Of a stretch of DNA of 23,626 bases, positions 3,011-16,130 are shown piece after piece; positions within the stretch are counted from its first letter, which is position 1; each line of letters begins with the position of its first letter. This DNA is from Andalucia godoyi And28 (taxonomy: Eukaryota > Protista > Jakobida), in NCBI GenBank assembly GCA_009859145.1, contig VRVR01000012.1, forward strand, positions 382,917-406,542, given 5' to 3'. Below the pieces are notes generated by a model, which was not told where the DNA came from, did no database searches, and saw only the letters and a list, made by a program, of their open reading frames with translations. The position numbers and the translations under genes are program-made.

Positions 3011-3083
3011 GAGGTGTTAGCTCAGTTGGTAGAGTAGCGGTCTCCAAAACCGTTGGTCGGGGGTTCGATCCCCTCACTCCTCA
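3011..3083 (+). tRNA. trnW: tRNA-Trp, anticodon CCA, no intron
   Basis: Cloverleaf: acceptor GAGGTGT/ACTCCTC, D arm GCTC/GAGT, anticodon arm GCGGT-CTCCAAA-ACCGT, T arm GGGGG-TTCGATC-CCCTC, A73. Pol III A and B boxes and a T5 terminator at 3084-3088; CCA not encoded. Confidence 0.96.
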
Positions 3084-4365: not shown

Positions 4366-5267
4366 TCTTCCAAACAACCGCCAATCGTAGAAGGACACAA
4401 AAGAAGACGATCCCCAAAAAGAAGGCGGGAAAAAAGAAAAAGATGAAGATGAAATCAAAAAGACTGAATAAGATGAAAATGAAAAAAATGTATAAAGGAA
4501 GAATGTAAATGAAAATAAAACGAGGTCAGGATAATCGGATACACTGTGCTGAGTGAGAGAATGAGCGATGAAAGGCCCGTTTAAGGCGCGCCAACTGGTG
4601 GGAGTTGCATTTTCCCGTCTGCTCACACGCACACATACACCGAGTACAGTTTTGTACTACAGTGATTTAATTGCTTCTCTGTGCTGTTCAGAGCTGCAAA
4701 GTGCAAATCTTGCAGTGGCGCATGGCAACGGGGAGGCAATAAGATACCTAGCGTGCAGGGCCGGGTCTCAGCACGTCACCAGAAACAACGTCGCCGCAAA
4801 TCCCGTCTCGGTTCTTTCTTGACAGACACACCAGACACAGAAACACAATGTCCCCCCGGTCGTCGCCCATGATCAAAGGAGACACTCCCACAATAACCAC
4901 AGGAAATCAAATGCGAGAAGCTTTCGCGGAATTCCATGTGAAACAATAGGCCGCGATGGTTCGAAAGGAAGCGCGAGTTGCCCAATACGGTTGCAGCTAT
5001 TTCCATTTCCGTCCGCTTCCGGGATGCAAGACGACGCATTCCGCACACCCAACTTCGAATCGACCTTTGCACACCCGACGCTACTTTTTTTTTGTGATGA
5101 TGTCCAGCTGGCCGGTGCTCGGTGTCCAAAGATAAACACCACCCAACTTCATTCGCTCGTTTAGTCGTTCCGTCATTTGCTTGGTTCTTTTTTTCCCCCC
5201 ACTCTCCTTCCTCCTCGGTTCTCACCTCCACCATCCCTTCCAGCCTCCCAGTTCTCAGTTCTTGCGG

Positions 5268-6394
5268 ATGGGGTTCATTCATCCGATTGTGGATGTGCTG
5301 CAGCACATTGCATCGCCACTGACTTCCTCGTGGGTCATCTACGGAACCACCAAGCTCACGCATGTTCCTTCCATCTCTGCCTACATGGCCGCTCGCTCCA
5401 TCCTCGCCTCTCGCGGTACCTCGAGCATGCACCTTCCAGTGTCCCCTCCTCCTCGTCCTGCTCTTTCTCCTCTCCCCCCTCCTTCTTCTTCCGCTTTGTC
5501 TGGTACGAGTAGCAGCATCGCGACATCTGTTCCTGCAGCCTCTGCCGTGCTGATGCAAAAGAGGATGTTCTCCACCTGTCTCGCTGCTGCTGCACGTCCT
5601 GGTCCATGACGATCATCACGTTCACACTCGCATTCCGGCTGCTGGTCTTTCCGCTGAACGTCTCACTCGTCCGGAACGCCCGCAGGCTCTACAACATCCA
5701 GCCGCAAATCGACCACTATTCCAGGCTTATGCGTGTCCCGGAGGCACTCGACGGCGGCACAGCCTCCCCTTCCGCCGTCGCAGCAGCAGCACCCCCCGCA
5801 CCCCCCGCACCCGCCGCAACGGCAGAGGCAGAGGCAAGAGAAGGCGAATCGTTTGAGGAGGTAGCAGCAAGTCGAGTCCGAGCAGCGTCCTCACTGATGG
5901 CGCTGTTCAAAGAGCAAAAGTGCCATCCGCTGAAAAACGTTCTTTCGCCGCTGTTGTTCGCGCCGATGTTTCTGACGATCTTTGCGGCTGTGCACCGGCT
6001 CTCGGATCCGCACCCCTCCGCCGCCACTGCCGGTGGAGTCGAGCTGGCGACGCAGCAGCACCCGGGAATCACGACAGAAGGAATGCTGTGGTTTTCGGAC
6101 CTGACGGCCTCGGACCCGACGTTTATGCTGCCGGTGGTCTCGGCGATTACGTGGCTCATTACGATCGAGCTCGGGCTCCAGGGCGTGCCTGCGTGGGCGA
6201 CGACGTCTGCCTGGAGGCAGATCGTCCGCCTCATCCCGCTGTTTTTCATGCCGATTACGTTCCCGCTGTCCTCGGGGGTGTTTCTGTACTGGCTGACTTC
6301 CAACGCCGTTGCAATCGCCCGCACCATCCTTTTGCGGTCCGCGGCTGTCCGAAAGTTCTTCCGTGTCCCCGATCTCGCCAAGACTCTTCCATGA
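5268..6394 (+). CDS. OXA1: Oxa1/Cox18/YidC-family membrane insertase; core in 5600-6394, 5' structure unresolved (two frames)
   Basis: WSMTIITFTLAFRLLVFPL (TM1 with conserved Arg), KCHPLK, LWFSDLTASDPTFMLP, SGVFLYWLTSN. An upstream ORF at 5268-5609 is in another frame. Confidence 0.85.
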
Positions 6395-9942: not shown

Positions 9943-10535
9943 GAAGCAATATACAGGACAGACGTAAACAACAAGCTACAAATAAGAGACCAAAGAACCA
10001 AAAGTATATATAATGAAAACACAAAAAATTAATTAAATTACAAAGAAGAGGAGAAAACACAAAGTATCACAACGGTATATTCAAAAAAATATAAATAAAT
10101 AAATATTATCAGTTCAGTATGCAGGTGAGATAATATAAGGTAGAAAGAATAAATACTGGACAAACCAGATCTGGAATCGTGGAATTACTCAATCTGGGGA
10201 AACATGATTTGATCGTTAAGACACACTGACACGGAATGACATTCAAAGCAAGAAAAAAAAAAAAAAGCGCAAAAGGAAAAAAGGTCACAATGACATCAGA
10301 ATCGCGATTCGGAAATGCCCGATGAAATCTCCGATGCATTTTCCTCTTCTTCTTCACCTGCTCTTTCCGCGACTTCCCCAAGAAAAAGAAGCGAGAAACA
10401 TAGTCCGATTCGCCGCCATGCATGCGAGAGACACAAACGACTCCAGAAGGCACTTCGCAGGCTTCTATCCAGCATGGTACATTAAAGACACGGGGGTGGT
10501 CGGTGCACTCTGTAGCATTCTCCGATCAACAAACA

Positions 10536-12113
10536 TCACAGAGAATCCGACGACATCGGCACATATCGCGGACGGCATTTCAGCACAACGGCGAAATTCT
10601 TTTCCATCTCGGTTGTCTTGTAGAGCTGCAGCATGGAAACAAGAGAAGCTGAGCTCCCTAGGTCCACATGCAGCCCCTCGCAGTCCAGCAGCAGATGCTG
10701 CATTCGCTTGGCGTCCGCTACACTGCAAGACAAGTACCCTTTCGTCCACTGGTGACCGCGGTAGGTCTGTGACAGGTTGTCCCGACTCACGCCAAAGCCA
10801 CACCATCCAAGCATCATATTCATGTCTGCGCGGCTGTCATTTGAGAAAACAGACGGTCTGCAAGCTGGCTCCACAACATAACCAGAAATGGTTGGGCGCA
10901 TGGACCGCAGGAACCGCAACACGCCCGAATACAGTGCCCCCGTTCCGACGCAGTCGACAAACACATCCAGCTGCGCACCGGTTGCGGATACCTGCTCAAA
11001 GATTTCGGACCCCAGGTTTCGAAAATAAGCCAGCAGCGAGTACGGATTGCAGAACGGGTCGTAGAGAATCCGGAACGTCCCGTCCCGTGTCGACACGTGC
11101 ATCGGTGTTGACTTGACCAGCACGGGACTCGATACATATGCAGAGCCGGGTCCGTACACGTGCTCCACGCCACGTGCCCGCATGTCTGCGATATGTCTTT
11201 CATTAAGCTGCCCAAAAACGGAATCGCTGCTCGTTGCTAGTGGAATCACGTGAACGGCAACGTGGACATTGGGAAACGAAGCCTCGTGGCGTACCATCCT
11301 CGACACAATCTTGACAGATTCTCGCAAATAGGGCATGTCAAAAGTCACAATCTCGATATTCTGCACACCGGAATCCGCGACCGGAAAGATCTCGTCCTGC
11401 AAACCAAGACGGAAAAACTCCATGATTTCGCGGTCCAAGTGGCATCCAGACGGATTCGCCAATTCGCACTTTGCAAACCATTTAGAGTGATGCACCTTCA
11501 GTTCCTGTCTCAAATTACGGAGTTCCACGAGCGGAGTGCAGCCTATCCGCTGAAGAGGGCTCTCCAATGCTGCAGGAGCATACGGCCCCGATGATGCATG
11601 CGTCGACAGCACGTTGCTCGGATACGGTTGTTTCCTGACCGAGAAGAGGCCGTCAAAAGAAGGGCCTTCGTAGTACGTCGATTTTGACGGCACAATCGGA
11701 AGCCCTTTCTTCTTAAGCTGCTCGTTGGAAAGATATTCAACCGCTCCTTTCTCTGCACTTTGCAATGCATTCGACGCAGCCGGTGTCCCAGAATAGTTGC
11801 CAATCAGCTTTTCCAGAACGCCACCATCACCACTTTTCCTACTGCTGCCATTGCTGTCACTTTGAAAACACCGGATGAACAAGCAGCGACGACGGAATCC
11901 CATCCGCTCTCGGAACTCTCTGAAACGAAGTTTAACAAGGGAAAAGAGAAAACCCGATTTTCTCTTTGAAAAAGCCTTTTCCCGGTCTTTTCCCATCTCG
12001 ATTTCATTTTCCATTTCCCGGCGGGCGGCATCAAGTGAGACTGCTTGCTCATTCTCTGGCCACTGCTTTCTTCGCCCTCTCGGGGTGGAAATTGAAGCTT
12101 GTGAAATGCACAT
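10536..12113 (-). CDS. Cysteine synthase/CBS-like PLP fold type II protein lacking the catalytic Lys; start at 12113 (525 aa) or 11903 (455 aa)
   Basis: IGCTPLVEL, FAKCELANPSGCHLDR (cf. AKLExxNPxGSVKDR), PFCNPYSLLAYFRNLGSEIFEQ, DVFVDCVGTGAL, GYVVEP, EGLHV. Uninterrupted ORF. Confidence 0.85.
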   Translation of the reverse strand: MCISQASISTPRGRRKQWPENEQAVSLDAARREMENEIEMGKDREKAFSKRKSGFLFSLVKLRFREFRERMGFRRRCLFIRCFQSDSNGSSRKSGDGGVLEKLIGNYSGTPAASNALQSAEKGAVEYLSNEQLKKKGLPIVPSKSTYYEGPSFDGLFSVRKQPYPSNVLSTHASSGPYAPAALESPLQRIGCTPLVELRNLRQELKVHHSKWFAKCELANPSGCHLDREIMEFFRLGLQDEIFPVADSGVQNIEIVTFDMPYLRESVKIVSRMVRHEASFPNVHVAVHVIPLATSSDSVFGQLNERHIADMRARGVEHVYGPGSAYVSSPVLVKSTPMHVSTRDGTFRILYDPFCNPYSLLAYFRNLGSEIFEQVSATGAQLDVFVDCVGTGALYSGVLRFLRSMRPTISGYVVEPACRPSVFSNDSRADMNMMLGWCGFGVSRDNLSQTYRGHQWTKGYLSCSVADAKRMQHLLLDCEGLHVDLGSSASLVSMLQLYKTTEMEKNFAVVLKCRPRYVPMSSDSL

Positions 12114-12194
12114 TTTATTATTATTATTATTATTATTATTATAATTATTATAATTATTATAATAATATTATATAATTATATATAATTATATATT
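12112..12194. repeat. 83-nt run containing only A and T, with (TTA)n, between divergent genes; candidate bidirectional promoter
   Basis: No G or C from 12112 to 12194. The promoter role is inference. Confidence 0.8.
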
Positions 12195-12326: not shown

Positions 12327-13634
12327 ATGTTTTACAGGGCGGTTCGAGAGCGACTGACTCCACAGTTTGCCAATCACACGCGTCGATTTTTTGCATCATT
12401 CGACAAGGATCCTTATGCAGTTCTCGGGGTGTCCAAGACTGCAGATGACCAAGAAATTAAGAAAAAGTACCGCGATCTTGCCAAGAAGTACCATCCGGAC
12501 GTGAATAAGGCGGCAGATGCACGCGATAAGTTCACGGAAATCAGCGCGGCGTATGAAATCCTGAGCAATGCGGAAAAGAGAAGACAGTACGACACGTTTG
12601 GGACAGTTGGCGAGGATTTCGGCCGTGGGGGTCCATCGGCTGGTGGTGCTGGAGGCCCAGGGGGGTTTGGGCATCCGTTTGGAGGAGCCGGGTTTTCCGC
12701 AGAAGACATTTTTGGAGAGCTTTTTGGAGCTGGAAAGAGAGGGAAACGTGCATCTGCTGGAGGTCGGCCAGGAAGCGGTGCGGCGAATGGCATGTCCGGA
12801 GGTCCGGTCCCAGGAAATGATATTCAAATGTCCATCCACATTCCCTTCATGGAGGCCGTCCATGGATCAACACGAGATGTTTCTGTGAACTCAAAGGCAT
12901 CGTGCACAACATGCAGTGGTTCCGGCGCGAAGCCAGGGACGTCGGCGAAAACGTGCCCCGAGTGCAAGGGATCAGGGCGAGTTATTTTCCAGTCTGGTTT
13001 CTTTTCTTTTGAAAATGTATGTTCTAGATGCGGTGGCTCCGGGCAGACCATTGCAAATCCGTGTGTCACGTGTTCAGGCTCCGGGAGAATGGAGCAGACC
13101 AAGACAATCACGATTACCGTTCCACAGGGCGTCGACAACGGAGTCACATTGCGCATTCCGAACAAGGGAGAGGCCGGTATCCGAGGAGGGCCTTCCGGTC
13201 ATTTGTACGTGGACATTCGTGTGGATCCAGATCCATTTTTCCGACGCGAAGGGGCGGATGTCCATACGGACGTGCACTTGTCCTTGGTAGAGGCTCTTCT
13301 CGGCGGGAACGTTACGATTCCGACGTTGAGTGGCGAAGTGGAGTTGAAGATTCCCGAAGGTGTCCAGCACAACGACGAGCGCGTCCTGCGTGCGAAGGGA
13401 ATCAAGAGATTGCACGAATCGGGGCATGGAAACCACTATGTGCATTTCAAGGTTGATTTGCCCAGCCGATTGAACGCCAAGCAACGAGAACTGATTGAGC
13501 AGTTTGCTGCGGAGGGCGGCGAACGAAGTTCTGCAAAGAGAGAAGGGATGTTCAAGACCGTCTTTAACAAGGTGAAGTCGTTCATGGATTCTAAACAGAA
13601 GAGCAGCAGCAGCACCGGCGGTTCGTCGTCCTAA
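12327..13634 (+). CDS. DNAJA3: Mitochondrial type I DnaJ/Hsp40 (Mdj1/Tid1-like), 435 aa
   Basis: Presequence ending ...TRRFFAS, J domain with HPD, G/F-rich linker, four CxxCxGxG repeats, C-terminal domain (PQGVDNG, GDLYV-like GHLYV). Confidence 0.93.
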   Translation: MFYRAVRERLTPQFANHTRRFFASFDKDPYAVLGVSKTADDQEIKKKYRDLAKKYHPDVNKAADARDKFTEISAAYEILSNAEKRRQYDTFGTVGEDFGRGGPSAGGAGGPGGFGHPFGGAGFSAEDIFGELFGAGKRGKRASAGGRPGSGAANGMSGGPVPGNDIQMSIHIPFMEAVHGSTRDVSVNSKASCTTCSGSGAKPGTSAKTCPECKGSGRVIFQSGFFSFENVCSRCGGSGQTIANPCVTCSGSGRMEQTKTITITVPQGVDNGVTLRIPNKGEAGIRGGPSGHLYVDIRVDPDPFFRREGADVHTDVHLSLVEALLGGNVTIPTLSGEVELKIPEGVQHNDERVLRAKGIKRLHESGHGNHYVHFKVDLPSRLNAKQRELIEQFAAEGGERSSAKREGMFKTVFNKVKSFMDSKQKSSSSTGGSSS

Positions 13635-14907: not shown

Positions 14908-15308
14908 AATTTTGGTGTTTTTCTTAAAAAAGTTAAAAATGATTAAATTCAGCAATCTTGATTAAAAAAAATTTCAAACGGACGGAGCCAGAGAGCCAGA
15001 GACCGAAGAGAAAATTAAATTAAATTAATAAATAAATAGAAAACGGATGATGAATGCAGCGTCTCTCTCTATGCAATTGCTGATCAATGCATGGTGCTTT
15101 GACGAATCCGACTCCTCTTCCCAAAACGGCTCGGTACTACGACCGCGAGGTGTCTGCAGCAGACTCGGGTTTTGAAAATTGGATCTGGGAGGCGTGAAGC
15201 TTGAATGCGCTCTGCTGCAGAACAAAACGTAACTGTAGCAGTCTTTTCCCCCTCCTTCGTACTACGAAACGAAAAGGAAATAAGAGGCAGAAGAAGGAAA
15301 GCAAAAAC

Positions 15309-16130
15309 ATGAGCGATGTGCATTCTGTTGATCTTGCACATCGCGTGTACAGATTTCTCGATGAATCGGCGCGCGTACATTTTTCACGCTGTCGGTTGAG
15401 TGAGTGCGCATTATGCCGAGACTTGAGACGGCAGTTGGATCGCGGGGTCGCTGCGACTGCACACAATTCTGCACTTCCCTCTTTGCAAGCTGAATTGAAT
15501 GCTTCAGCGGGGAATCAGCCTGGAGGTGGAGGTGGAGAAGGAGGTGGAGGTGCGTCGTCGTCGTCGTCGTCGTCGTTATTCGAGAATGACCACTTCGAAG
15601 AAGTAGTCATGATGAGTGACACTGAAGATTGCTGCGAGCCAGTCCAGACCTGCGCTGATCCAAGGCAACCACAACATATTCCGGTGAGTACGCCAAAATC
15701 GATGGTTGGAGCCGAAGACCGCGACGACATTCTTGCCAGTCGAATTCTATCAGATCGGTCTTTTCGCGATGCCGACAGCGGAGAACCGACAGCGAAAAGA
15801 AACAATAGCAATACGAAGAAGAAGAAGAAGAAGAAGATCACTCCTATATTTGTCCGACCCTTGCAAGACACCGACTTTCCAGTCCAGTTTTCCCTCACAA
15901 ATTCTATCGAGTCCAATGTCACTGCTTCGAATCCTGCATCTTCCATCCATCATCCAATTCCGACATCCAGCGTGGTTCCACCCATTCCGGCTGTGGCAAC
16001 CAACGCAGACTCTGCGTCGAATACCAGCACTTCCGGCGGCACCAGTGGAGGAGGCATGTCGGTACGGCGGCGTCAGAAAACCATCAAGGACTTTTTCTCG
16101 GGAAAACCAATCAAGCACCGCAAAAGGTGA
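15309..16130 (+). CDS. Hypothetical, mostly disordered nuclear protein with C-terminal PIP box, 273 aa
   Basis: Long ORF with in-frame G/S/K repeats, K7 NLS-like run, QKTIKDFF near the C-terminus. No family recognised. Confidence 0.7.
   Translation: MSDVHSVDLAHRVYRFLDESARVHFSRCRLSECALCRDLRRQLDRGVAATAHNSALPSLQAELNASAGNQPGGGGGEGGGGASSSSSSSLFENDHFEEVVMMSDTEDCCEPVQTCADPRQPQHIPVSTPKSMVGAEDRDDILASRILSDRSFRDADSGEPTAKRNNSNTKKKKKKKITPIFVRPLQDTDFPVQFSLTNSIESNVTASNPASSIHHPIPTSSVVPPIPAVATNADSASNTSTSGGTSGGGMSVRRRQKTIKDFFSGKPIKHRKR

Follow-up and report, generated by a model that had tools for sequence, protein, structure and literature searches.

The window analysed here, 23,626 nucleotides of the Andalucia godoyi nuclear contig VRVR01000012.1, contains a gene for a CysK/CBS-fold (PALP) protein of 455 amino acids that lacks the catalytic lysine. 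Judged from sequence, the protein keeps the CysK fold without the PLP lysine or most of the active-site residues, which makes it, with high probability, a pseudoenzyme without catalytic activity. It is homologous to an enzyme family yet has lost residues that are essential for catalysis, as a pseudoenzyme would. We consider it reasonably likely that the gene is a maintained, lineage-specific CysK/CBS paralogue that has turned into a pseudoenzyme and acts by binding, most likely in a dimer. The features of the gene are listed below in window coordinates.

11904-12113, minus strand: upstream in-frame open stretch of 70 codons that precedes the annotated ATG
10536-11903, minus strand: the open reading frame, 455 codons plus TGA, deposited as gene model P0001
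11580-11903, minus strand: N-terminal extension (aa 1-108), homology-free and predicted to be mostly disordered (pLDDT 30-60)
11412-11579, minus strand: large domain, conserved segment 1 (aa 109-164), with IGCTPLVEL and NPSGCHLDR
11436-11438, minus strand: TTG codon for Leu156 (Leu226 in the 525-codon reading frame), where the family has the Schiff-base lysine
11073-11411, minus strand: degenerate small (substrate-closing) subdomain (aa 165-277), 113 residues compared with about 86 in the family
11262-11279, minus strand: SFPNVH (S209-F210-P211-N212-V213-H214), the best candidate for the collinear equivalent of the TSGNTG (Asn) loop, placed with low confidence
10581-11072, minus strand: large domain, conserved segment 2 (aa 278-441), with GTGAL and with P283, W367 and G416 in place of Gln, Gly and Ser, respectively
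10932-10946, minus strand: GTGAL, the phosphate-binding glycine loop (GTGGT in the family)

The gene was first noticed in a sequence-only reading, which described a frame unbroken over more than 450 codons with an N-terminal extension of about 115 residues. Both points hold, as all 455 codons are open up to the TGA and PALP homology begins at about residue 109 of the 455 amino acid model. The chance of 455 open codons is small (P ~1.6e-10), and 2000 shuffles yielded open stretches of at most 270 codons. The in-frame codon-usage score is 0.136 (0.06-0.25 for ten neighboring genes), and from about residue 11 to the end the codon signal keeps to this frame, the degenerate middle region included. 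We ruled out a hidden frameshift or intron behind the degenerate middle third because the 1336 HSPs obtained with 76 relatives in tblastn included no significant off-frame match (best off-frame E=0.004) and the codon signal is in frame throughout. By these measures the reading frame looks maintained, unlike a decaying pseudogene. An intact reading frame is by itself also compatible with a very recent loss of function, which is disfavored because the divergence of the protein is broad.

The frame remains open further upstream, to an ATG at 12113, for a total of 525 codons. We read the added stretch as probable 5′ UTR, not coding sequence. Within it the codon-usage score fails to separate the frames (-0.016 vs -0.062), it continues directly from a (TTA)n microsatellite, and the 525 amino acid product has no record in the sequence collection. 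In the assembly collection, this gene and four neighboring genes each have one genome contig as their sole record, and there is no record for three other neighboring reading frames as delimited here.

The protein matches Pfam PALP (PF00291) with 64.6 bits (gathering cut-off 35, E=1.2e-17), and its best relatives in a phmmer search of solved structures are beta-cyanoalanine synthase, CBS, and CysK. The AlphaFold2 model (pTM 0.73; 151 residues at pLDDT of at least 90) is predicted to have the two-domain alpha/beta fold of fold-type-II enzymes and can be superposed on solved members, with low confidence in the small domain. The top 50 Foldseek matches are all enzymes of the CysK, beta-cyanoalanine synthase, and CBS family (E down to 1.5e-17), and the target-normalized TM is 0.72-0.80 to CysK-sized chains (CysK and CAS). 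Identity to the family is 21-30%. The NCBIfam scores fall below the cut-offs for CysK/CysM (TIGR01136, 54.9 vs 344 bits; TIGR01139, 50.1 vs 351; TIGR01138, 38.4 vs 394), about 6-9-fold under them, and for cystathionine beta-synthase (TIGR01137, 42.2 vs 510 bits). Pfam detects no CBS-pair (Bateman) domain in the protein, and the chain ends 14 residues past the PALP core.

Conservation is concentrated in the large domain. Segment 1 aligns to the profile HMM with 38.5 bits (model positions 9-62; pLDDT 89-97) and segment 2 with 91.7 bits (model positions 149-302; pLDDT mostly 87-97). The small subdomain, model positions 63-148, has no significant alignment; it holds an insertion of about 20 residues, and pLDDT is <50 at residues 191-201, 203-231, and 255-265. 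The first 13 residues of the N-terminal extension form a basic segment (MGFRRRCLFIRCF), and the first 15 residues include four arginines and no acidic residue. Among 49 columns that are at least 80% conserved in relatives, the protein keeps 29, mostly structural, and the 20 that differ include canonical cofactor and substrate contacts.

In fold-type-II enzymes, an active-site lysine makes the internal aldimine (Schiff base) with PLP. Leu156, in the motif NPSGCHLDR (11456-11430, minus strand), falls on this lysine in three independent alignments: phmmer against the solved structures 6pmu and 5ohx, MAFFT with 76 relatives (K in 72 of them), and a profile HMM from which the protein itself was left out. 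The observation, in the sequence-only reading, of a TTG leucine codon at 11438-11436 in place of the PLP lysine, at least two substitutions from a lysine codon, is confirmed, TTG being two from AAA or AAG. We found no substitute lysine at any cofactor-contacting column in the MAFFT and profile HMM alignments. The lysines of the domain are K136, K141, K145, K198, K264, K388, K399, K429, K435, and K442, and K145 is the structural lysine of AKxE.

Further residues are replaced alongside K to L156: S to C154, Q to P283 (the equivalent of Q142), G to W367 (a pocket glycine of the family), and S to G416. The family serine hydrogen-bonds the pyridine N1 of PLP. It is present in 62 of the 76 relatives and is aligned with Gly416 by both MAFFT and the HMM, although a one-residue shift would restore a serine. 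The phosphate loop does read GTGAL (10946-10932) for GTGGT, as had been reported. Its threonine (T or S in 74 of 76 relatives) is Leu324, and G320-T321-G322 and the helix after it are retained.

The substrate loop TSGNTG had been thought to be replaced by TFDMPY. This is not borne out, as TFDMPY (11345-11328, aa 187-192) lies inside the insertion of the small subdomain, and we rejected it in favor of SFPNVH. The latter stands between the anchors E207 and E235-R236, in a stretch that is left unaligned by the profile HMM and has pLDDT <50. If SFPNVH is the collinear counterpart, the asparagine is kept (N212; N in 69 of 76 relatives) and both glycines are lost (G to P211 and G to H214; G in 74 and 67 of 76). 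The suggestion of a probably non-catalytic protein with the cysteine-synthase fold is supported and was, if anything, understated: the internal aldimine cannot form, and the Q142 equivalent, the loop threonine, the pyridine-N serine, and several pocket glycines are changed as well.

No orthologue came up when 1.84 billion representatives were scanned exhaustively with HMMER, and only the protein itself matched at E<1e-10. A word-indexed search returned the protein itself and one weak CysK match. The absence of orthologues from the databases scanned supports the earlier view that the gene is lineage-specific. A. godoyi also possesses a canonical cysteine synthase, ANDGO_01180, which is listed in Table S4 of PMC7050145 as K01738 with a BLASTp match of E=6e-104 to the Acanthamoeba castellanii orthologue.

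We infer that the protein is probably unable to do beta-replacement chemistry, and stable holding of PLP is improbable. Some non-covalent ligand binding may be possible, given the retained GTG and the putative Asn212. We propose that the protein would act through protein binding. Enzymes of the CysK and CBS type form obligate dimers. Because of this, and because the organism has ANDGO_01180, the conserved large domain would most likely serve to bind an active paralogue or a second copy of the protein, and the protein would then be the non-catalytic, stabilizing or regulatory half of a dimer. By analogy with the studied cases described below, this role as a dimer partner seems the most likely one. 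The 108-residue disordered N-terminal extension would give targeting or an additional interaction surface. The Asn loop and Gln of CysK hold the C-terminal carboxylate of SAT. Binding of a partner C-terminus as in CysK-SAT, raised in the sequence-only reading, is disfavored because both the loop and the Gln are altered here.

More tentatively, the protein may be a stand-alone, Andalucia-specific, CysK-derived pseudoenzyme, recruited as a partner with a regulatory or scaffolding function. It could form a heterodimer with the active cysteine synthase or CBS of A. godoyi and tune sulfur amino-acid metabolism, or it could have been drawn into an unrelated assembly, possibly a mitochondrial one, by way of the N-terminal extension and the remodeled lid domain. 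The idea, raised in the sequence-only reading, that it is a subunit of a mitochondrial complex gained no support from our analysis. The basic N-terminus has a weak helical hydrophobic moment. In the searchable part of the mitochondrial proteome tables published for A. godoyi there was no entry for the protein, but the neighboring DnaJ was missing there too, so this absence says little.

These observations also bear on a reading that we regard as unlikely, in which the protein is a non-catalytic sensor or binder of a ligand. Its remodeled cleft would take up an amino acid, a phosphorylated metabolite, or PLP without a covalent bond, and the protein would act by itself or together with a partner that is not a paralogue, for example within a mitochondrial assembly as the sequence-only reading proposed. 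The retained G320-T321-G322 and following helix, the possible retention of N212, the confidently modeled large domain, and the basic, arginine-containing N-terminus are consistent with it, and lysine mutants of OASS hold PLP as an external aldimine (cited in PMC3316156). The pocket itself argues against it, with the pyridine-N serine, loop threonine, Gln, and pocket glycines lost and a tryptophan at a pocket glycine. For the mitochondrial form, the weak hydrophobic moment counts as well, the protein has no entry in the searchable part of the proteome tables, and we know of no PALP-fold subunit of a mitochondrial complex.

We consider it improbable that the gene is open by chance, as a relic in decay or neutral drift or as an artifact of annotation. 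It is an orphan for which no orthologue was found, its only assembly-collection record is the genome contig, and its middle third is degenerate, all of which such a relic could explain. However, at 21-30% family identity, 455 codons would not remain open (by the chance and shuffle estimates above), codon usage is gene-like and in frame even in the degenerate region, the 29 conserved and mostly structural columns are kept, and the large domain still models at pLDDT >90. We give even less weight to a still-active enzyme of divergent chemistry, which would hold PLP through another residue or as an external aldimine, or would use another cofactor; this is highly improbable. The fold and reading frame are maintained, and reviews note that calls of pseudoenzymes from sequence alone are sometimes overturned where catalytic residues have migrated (PMC10211241). 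Here no lysine aligns to the cofactor-contacting columns, at least six canonical contacts are gone together, and the scores are 38-55 bits against CysK, CysM, and CBS model cut-offs of 344-510 bits.

The protein shares its PALP fold, domain order, and catalytic-core length with CysK/CysM, plant OAS-TL, and beta-cyanoalanine synthase, and like CysK-type enzymes it has no Bateman domains. The CysK-family motifs IGxTPLVxL, AKxE, and NPxG..DR are all present in it, as are the glycine-loop GTG and many of the structural glycines. It differs from that family in lacking the Schiff-base lysine, Gln, loop threonine, and pyridine-N serine, in its remodeled small domain (27 residues longer), and in the 108 amino acid N-terminal extension.

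Dead paralogues of metabolic enzymes frequently prove to be regulators. We found only two studied dead fold-type-II PLP proteins in the literature, the N-module of nematode CBS-1 and plant TSB-like. The CBS-1 N-module (K to E) binds no PLP, is non-catalytic by experiment, is required for solubility of the active module, and has been proposed to mimic a dimer partner (PMC3316156). Like the A. godoyi protein, it is a CysK/CBS-fold unit without the PLP lysine, has a bulky residue at the pocket glycine, and coexists with an active paralogous unit. CBS-1 carries its dead and active units as a tandem fusion in a single polypeptide, whereas the A. godoyi protein is encoded by a separate gene; the lysine is replaced by Glu in the former and by Leu in the latter. 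The two are unrelated by descent, one arising from a nematode duplication and the other being a jakobid orphan.

TSB-like binds and allosterically activates TSA without catalysis (bioRxiv 10.1101/2024.08.26.609694). It and the A. godoyi protein are both stand-alone dead paralogues of fold-type-II PLP enzymes, TSB-like in the TrpB subfamily and the protein described here in CysK. The partner of TSB-like (TSA) is known and its binding surface is conserved, whereas any partner of the A. godoyi protein is hypothetical; TSB-like is widespread in eudicots, and the A. godoyi protein has no orthologue in the representatives scanned.

A free-standing CysK-like pseudoenzyme would be a third, independent origin among the studied fold-type-II cases. 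A recruited partner, if that reading is true, would be the first characterized free-standing dead member of the CysK/CBS branch. At present the gene is an annotation-level curiosity, one orphan in one species. Andalucia godoyi is a deep-branching protist with a compact genome that serves as a reference for early mitochondrial evolution, and the protein could show how its cysteine synthesis is controlled.

Lysine loss also occurs in relatives of the protein. The lysine column is T, D, Y, or S in four of the 76 nearest metagenomic relatives (P0004, P0023, P0090, and P0141). These are of normal length and have no N-terminal extension, unlike the A. godoyi protein, and most retain the Asn loop and Gln that it has lost or altered. 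P0023 resembles it in having a changed glycine loop (ATGAL), at 26% identity. Another relative, P0116, is also N-terminally extended, by a segment without real similarity to the A. godoyi extension. We rejected a special kinship with P0116 or with the lysine-less proteins (identity 26-32%). The lysine-less CysK-like proteins are independent losses, not orthologues of the A. godoyi gene, and their occurrence among the 76 relatives suggests that loss of the lysine is recurrent and under-studied.

The minus-strand ORF at 10536-11903 of the Andalucia godoyi window encodes a protein (the target) with the CysK/CBS fold, in which the large domain is conserved, the lid domain is remodelled, and the Schiff-base lysine and most cofactor and substrate contacts are lost. 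Pfam PALP matches it at 64.6 bits (E=1.2e-17). In a phmmer search against solved structures, the motif NPSGCHLDR (11456-11430, minus strand) pairs with NPTASLKDR of a beta-cyanoalanine synthase (6pmu) and NPGGSVKDR of a CBS (5ohx), so the leucine (TTG, 11438-11436) falls on the Schiff-base lysine. This residue, Leu156, occupies a MAFFT column that is lysine in 72 of the 76 relatives that an exhaustive scan supplied, and a profile HMM of the relatives, with the target left out, gives the same register. TTG is two substitutions away from either Lys codon. GTGAL (10946-10932, minus strand) stands in place of the phosphate loop GTGGT, whose final position is Thr or Ser in 74/76 relatives. The sequence-only reading had proposed these two replacements, the distance of TTG from a Lys codon, an unbroken frame of more than 450 codons and an N-terminal extension, all of which are borne out (there are 455 codons plus TGA, and profile HMM homology to the family starts at residue 109). 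Further active-site positions differ from the family.

Residues conserved in the 76 relatives (count), the residue in the target, and roles presumed by comparison with the Salmonella OASS and human CBS enzymes.
Ser of NPxGS (74/76): Cys154; presumably part of the Lys motif
Gln, Q142 equivalent (73/76): Pro283; presumed contact to the substrate carboxylate
Conserved His (64/76): Tyr293
Fourth Gly of GTGGT (63/76): Ala323; presumed phosphate loop
Thr of GTGGT (67/76): Leu324; presumed phosphate loop
Gly of the G-I-G turn (69/76): Trp367; presumed to lie beneath the cofactor
Ser aligned to Gly416 (62/76): Gly416; presumed bond to pyridine N1

Among the relatives, 49 columns are conserved at 80% or more; the target retains 29 of them, and these 29 are mostly structural (IGxTPLxxL, AKxE, NPxG, DR, several glycines, and Pro346). 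The NCBIfam CysK, CysM, and CBS models score it at 38-55 bits, against cut-offs of 344-510.

The profile HMM matches the target in two pieces, model positions 9-62 at aa 109-164 (38.5 bits) and 149-302 at aa 278-441 (91.7 bits). Positions 63-148, which we take to be the small mobile domain that contains the Asn loop and shuts on the substrate, have no match in the target. An AlphaFold2 model from the 77-sequence alignment (pTM 0.73) agrees with this picture, with the large domain mostly predicted at pLDDT >90 and values <50 at residues 191-201, 203-231, and 255-265. Foldseek places cysteine synthases, beta-cyanoalanine synthases, CBS, and enzymes closely related to them in its first 50 ranks, with E-values as low as 1.5e-17 and a target-normalised TM of 0.72-0.80 for CysK-sized chains. 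TFDMPY (aa 187-192, 11345-11328) had been read as the counterpart of the substrate loop TSGNTG. We reject this assignment: it falls within a ~20-residue insertion relative to the family, and the collinear match of E-A-T-S-G-N-T-G is E207-A-S-F-P-N-V-H214, with SFPNVH at 11279-11262 (minus strand) between two alignable anchors, E207 and an 'ER....A.G' helix at 235-245. With low confidence in every method, the Asn of the loop would be retained and the two loop glycines replaced by Pro and His.

The gene is intact and coded like its neighbours. The probability of 455 open codons at the local base composition is ~1.6e-10, and open stretches reached at most 270 codons when the ORF was shuffled 2000 times. 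A codon-usage log-odds score, trained on ten Pfam-supported window genes with neighbours scored leave-one-out, is 0.136 in frame, compared to 0.06-0.25 for the neighbours, and negative in all other frames of the target. In 40-codon windows the correct frame is best from about residue 11 to the C-terminal end, and so it is across the degenerate middle third and in most of the extension at the N-terminus. A frameshift or retained intron behind the odd middle region is rejected because the 76 relatives, compared with the locus by tblastn, gave no significant off-frame match. The reading frame is open upstream as far as an ATG at 12113; the annotated start at 11903 appears to be the better one, since the 70 codons 5′ of it show no frame preference and issue straight from a (TTA)n microsatellite. 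This imperfect repeat (~27 copies, 12115-12194) lies in the spacer from which the target and DnaJ genes diverge, adjoins the first in-frame ATG, and yields poly-Leu and poly-Tyr frames in a mechanical ORF list. A 264-aa ORF antisense to the target (10322-11116, plus strand) has negative codon usage in its frames and is most likely a by-product of sense-strand codon bias, not a gene.

A word-indexed protein search returned nothing but the target itself and one weak CysK match. HMMER was then run exhaustively over 1.84 billion cluster representatives, with EukProt among the sources, and gave 177 proteins with E<=0.001. The query alone fell below E=1e-10; the others are ordinary proteins of the CysK, CysM, and CBS-like kinds that share 21-30% identity with it. 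Neither an orthologue nor a paralogue of this kind was detectable among these representatives, which upholds the earlier suggestion of a lineage-specific protein. A. godoyi also encodes a canonical cysteine synthase, ANDGO_01180 (K01738; BLASTp E=6e-104 to the Acanthamoeba orthologue; low predicted mitochondrial targeting score; PMC7050145 Table S4), so the target is an additional, highly divergent paralogue and not the sole copy. Four of the 76 closest relatives also lack the lysine: P0004 (T), P0023 (D), P0090 (Y), and P0141 (S). P0023 is 26% identical to the target and its glycine loop reads ATGAL. These losses arose independently, and PLP-lysine loss seems to be recurrent, and largely undescribed, in the CysK-like family.

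We infer that the target lacks beta-replacement catalysis and functions by binding, and it probably does not hold PLP. The reading we favor, with some reserve, is a paralogue that is maintained and non-catalytic and works through protein binding. In the model we regard as best supported, it would be a non-catalytic dimer partner or regulator, pairing with an active paralogue or with itself; this step is also the weakest part of the protein-binding reading. The model is proposed because CysK and CBS enzymes are dimers, because the large domain is the preserved part, and because dead paralogues of fold-type-II PLP enzymes that may work alike are known in the nematode CBS-1 N-module and plant TSB-like. 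The CBS-1 N-module carries K->E, has a pocket Gly replaced by a bulky residue, binds no PLP, is needed for solubility of the active module, and was proposed to stand in for the dimer's second subunit (PMC3316156). TSB-like, of the same fold, is catalytically dead, and binds and activates TSA (bioRxiv 10.1101/2024.08.26.609694). Since both the Asn loop and the Gln that hold it are changed, the C-terminus of a serine acetyltransferase is unlikely to be captured in the canonical way.

A ligand sensor or a subunit of some other complex is a possible but distinctly less likely role. The mitochondrial complex subunit of the sequence-only reading is unsupported: residues 1-15 are basic (four Arg, no acidic residue), but the helical hydrophobic moment is at most 0.5. 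The target was not found in the searched part of the A. godoyi mitochondrial proteome tables, and neither was the neighbouring DnaJ. We consider a neutral relic doubtful; the open ORF, codon usage, and off-frame check argue for a maintained coding gene, selection itself being a separate matter. That the target is still an enzyme is very improbable, and in the alignment with the 76 relatives no lysine of its domain falls in a cofactor-contacting column. The term pseudoenzyme, as had been proposed on slighter evidence, is thereby supported.

By descent the target belongs to the CysK/CBS branch of the PALP superfamily. Compared with cysteine synthase and CBS, it fails the defining functional features of both and therefore should not be annotated as either. 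Judged from its sequence, it would be a pseudoenzyme derived from CysK that stands alone, is extended at the N-terminus, has a remodelled lid, and is confined to one protist lineage. Pseudoenzymes are common across enzyme families (PMC5106787, PMC10211241). According to the 2012 CBS-1 paper, no other fold-type-II protein without a PLP site was known (PMC3316156); with TSB-like and the metagenomic cases described here, the class proves to be wider. The case is clean, can be checked, and comes from an organism of evolutionary importance; its conservation is limited to one genome.

The 455-aa product has a single record, on contig VRVR01000012.1 (assembly GCA_009859145.1); the draft nuclear genome of this jakobid has the accession VRVR00000000 (PMC7050145). 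The window is consistent with the compact, intron-poor A. godoyi genome and carries genes on both strands.

Other genes and ORFs of the window.
Class-III aminotransferase
3011-3083, plus: tRNA-Trp, anticodon CCA called by ARAGORN and by Rfam (64.1 bits), with the aminotransferase and ELO genes on either side
ELO elongase
4776-5558, minus: ORF of 260 aa, no Pfam match, flanked by annotated genes
5606-6394, plus: Oxa1/Cox18, 60KD_IMP type, 262 aa
MIR-domain protein
Polyprenyl synthase
TMEM17
12327-13634, plus: DnaJ
MEC-17
2Fe-2S thioredoxin-like protein
CCDC22
15201-16130, plus: ORF of 309 aa, no Pfam match, flanked by annotated genes

The 260- and 309-aa ORFs are absent from the genome record's gene calls listed for this locus (L001). 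In Table S1 of PMC7050145, the entry 'CIV assembly protein Cox18a (Oxa1La), _02660' equals the product of 5606-6394 in length. The adjacent tags _02663 (DNA ligase) and _02666 (Cox6b) in that table match no window genes, so locus tags are not simply positional here.
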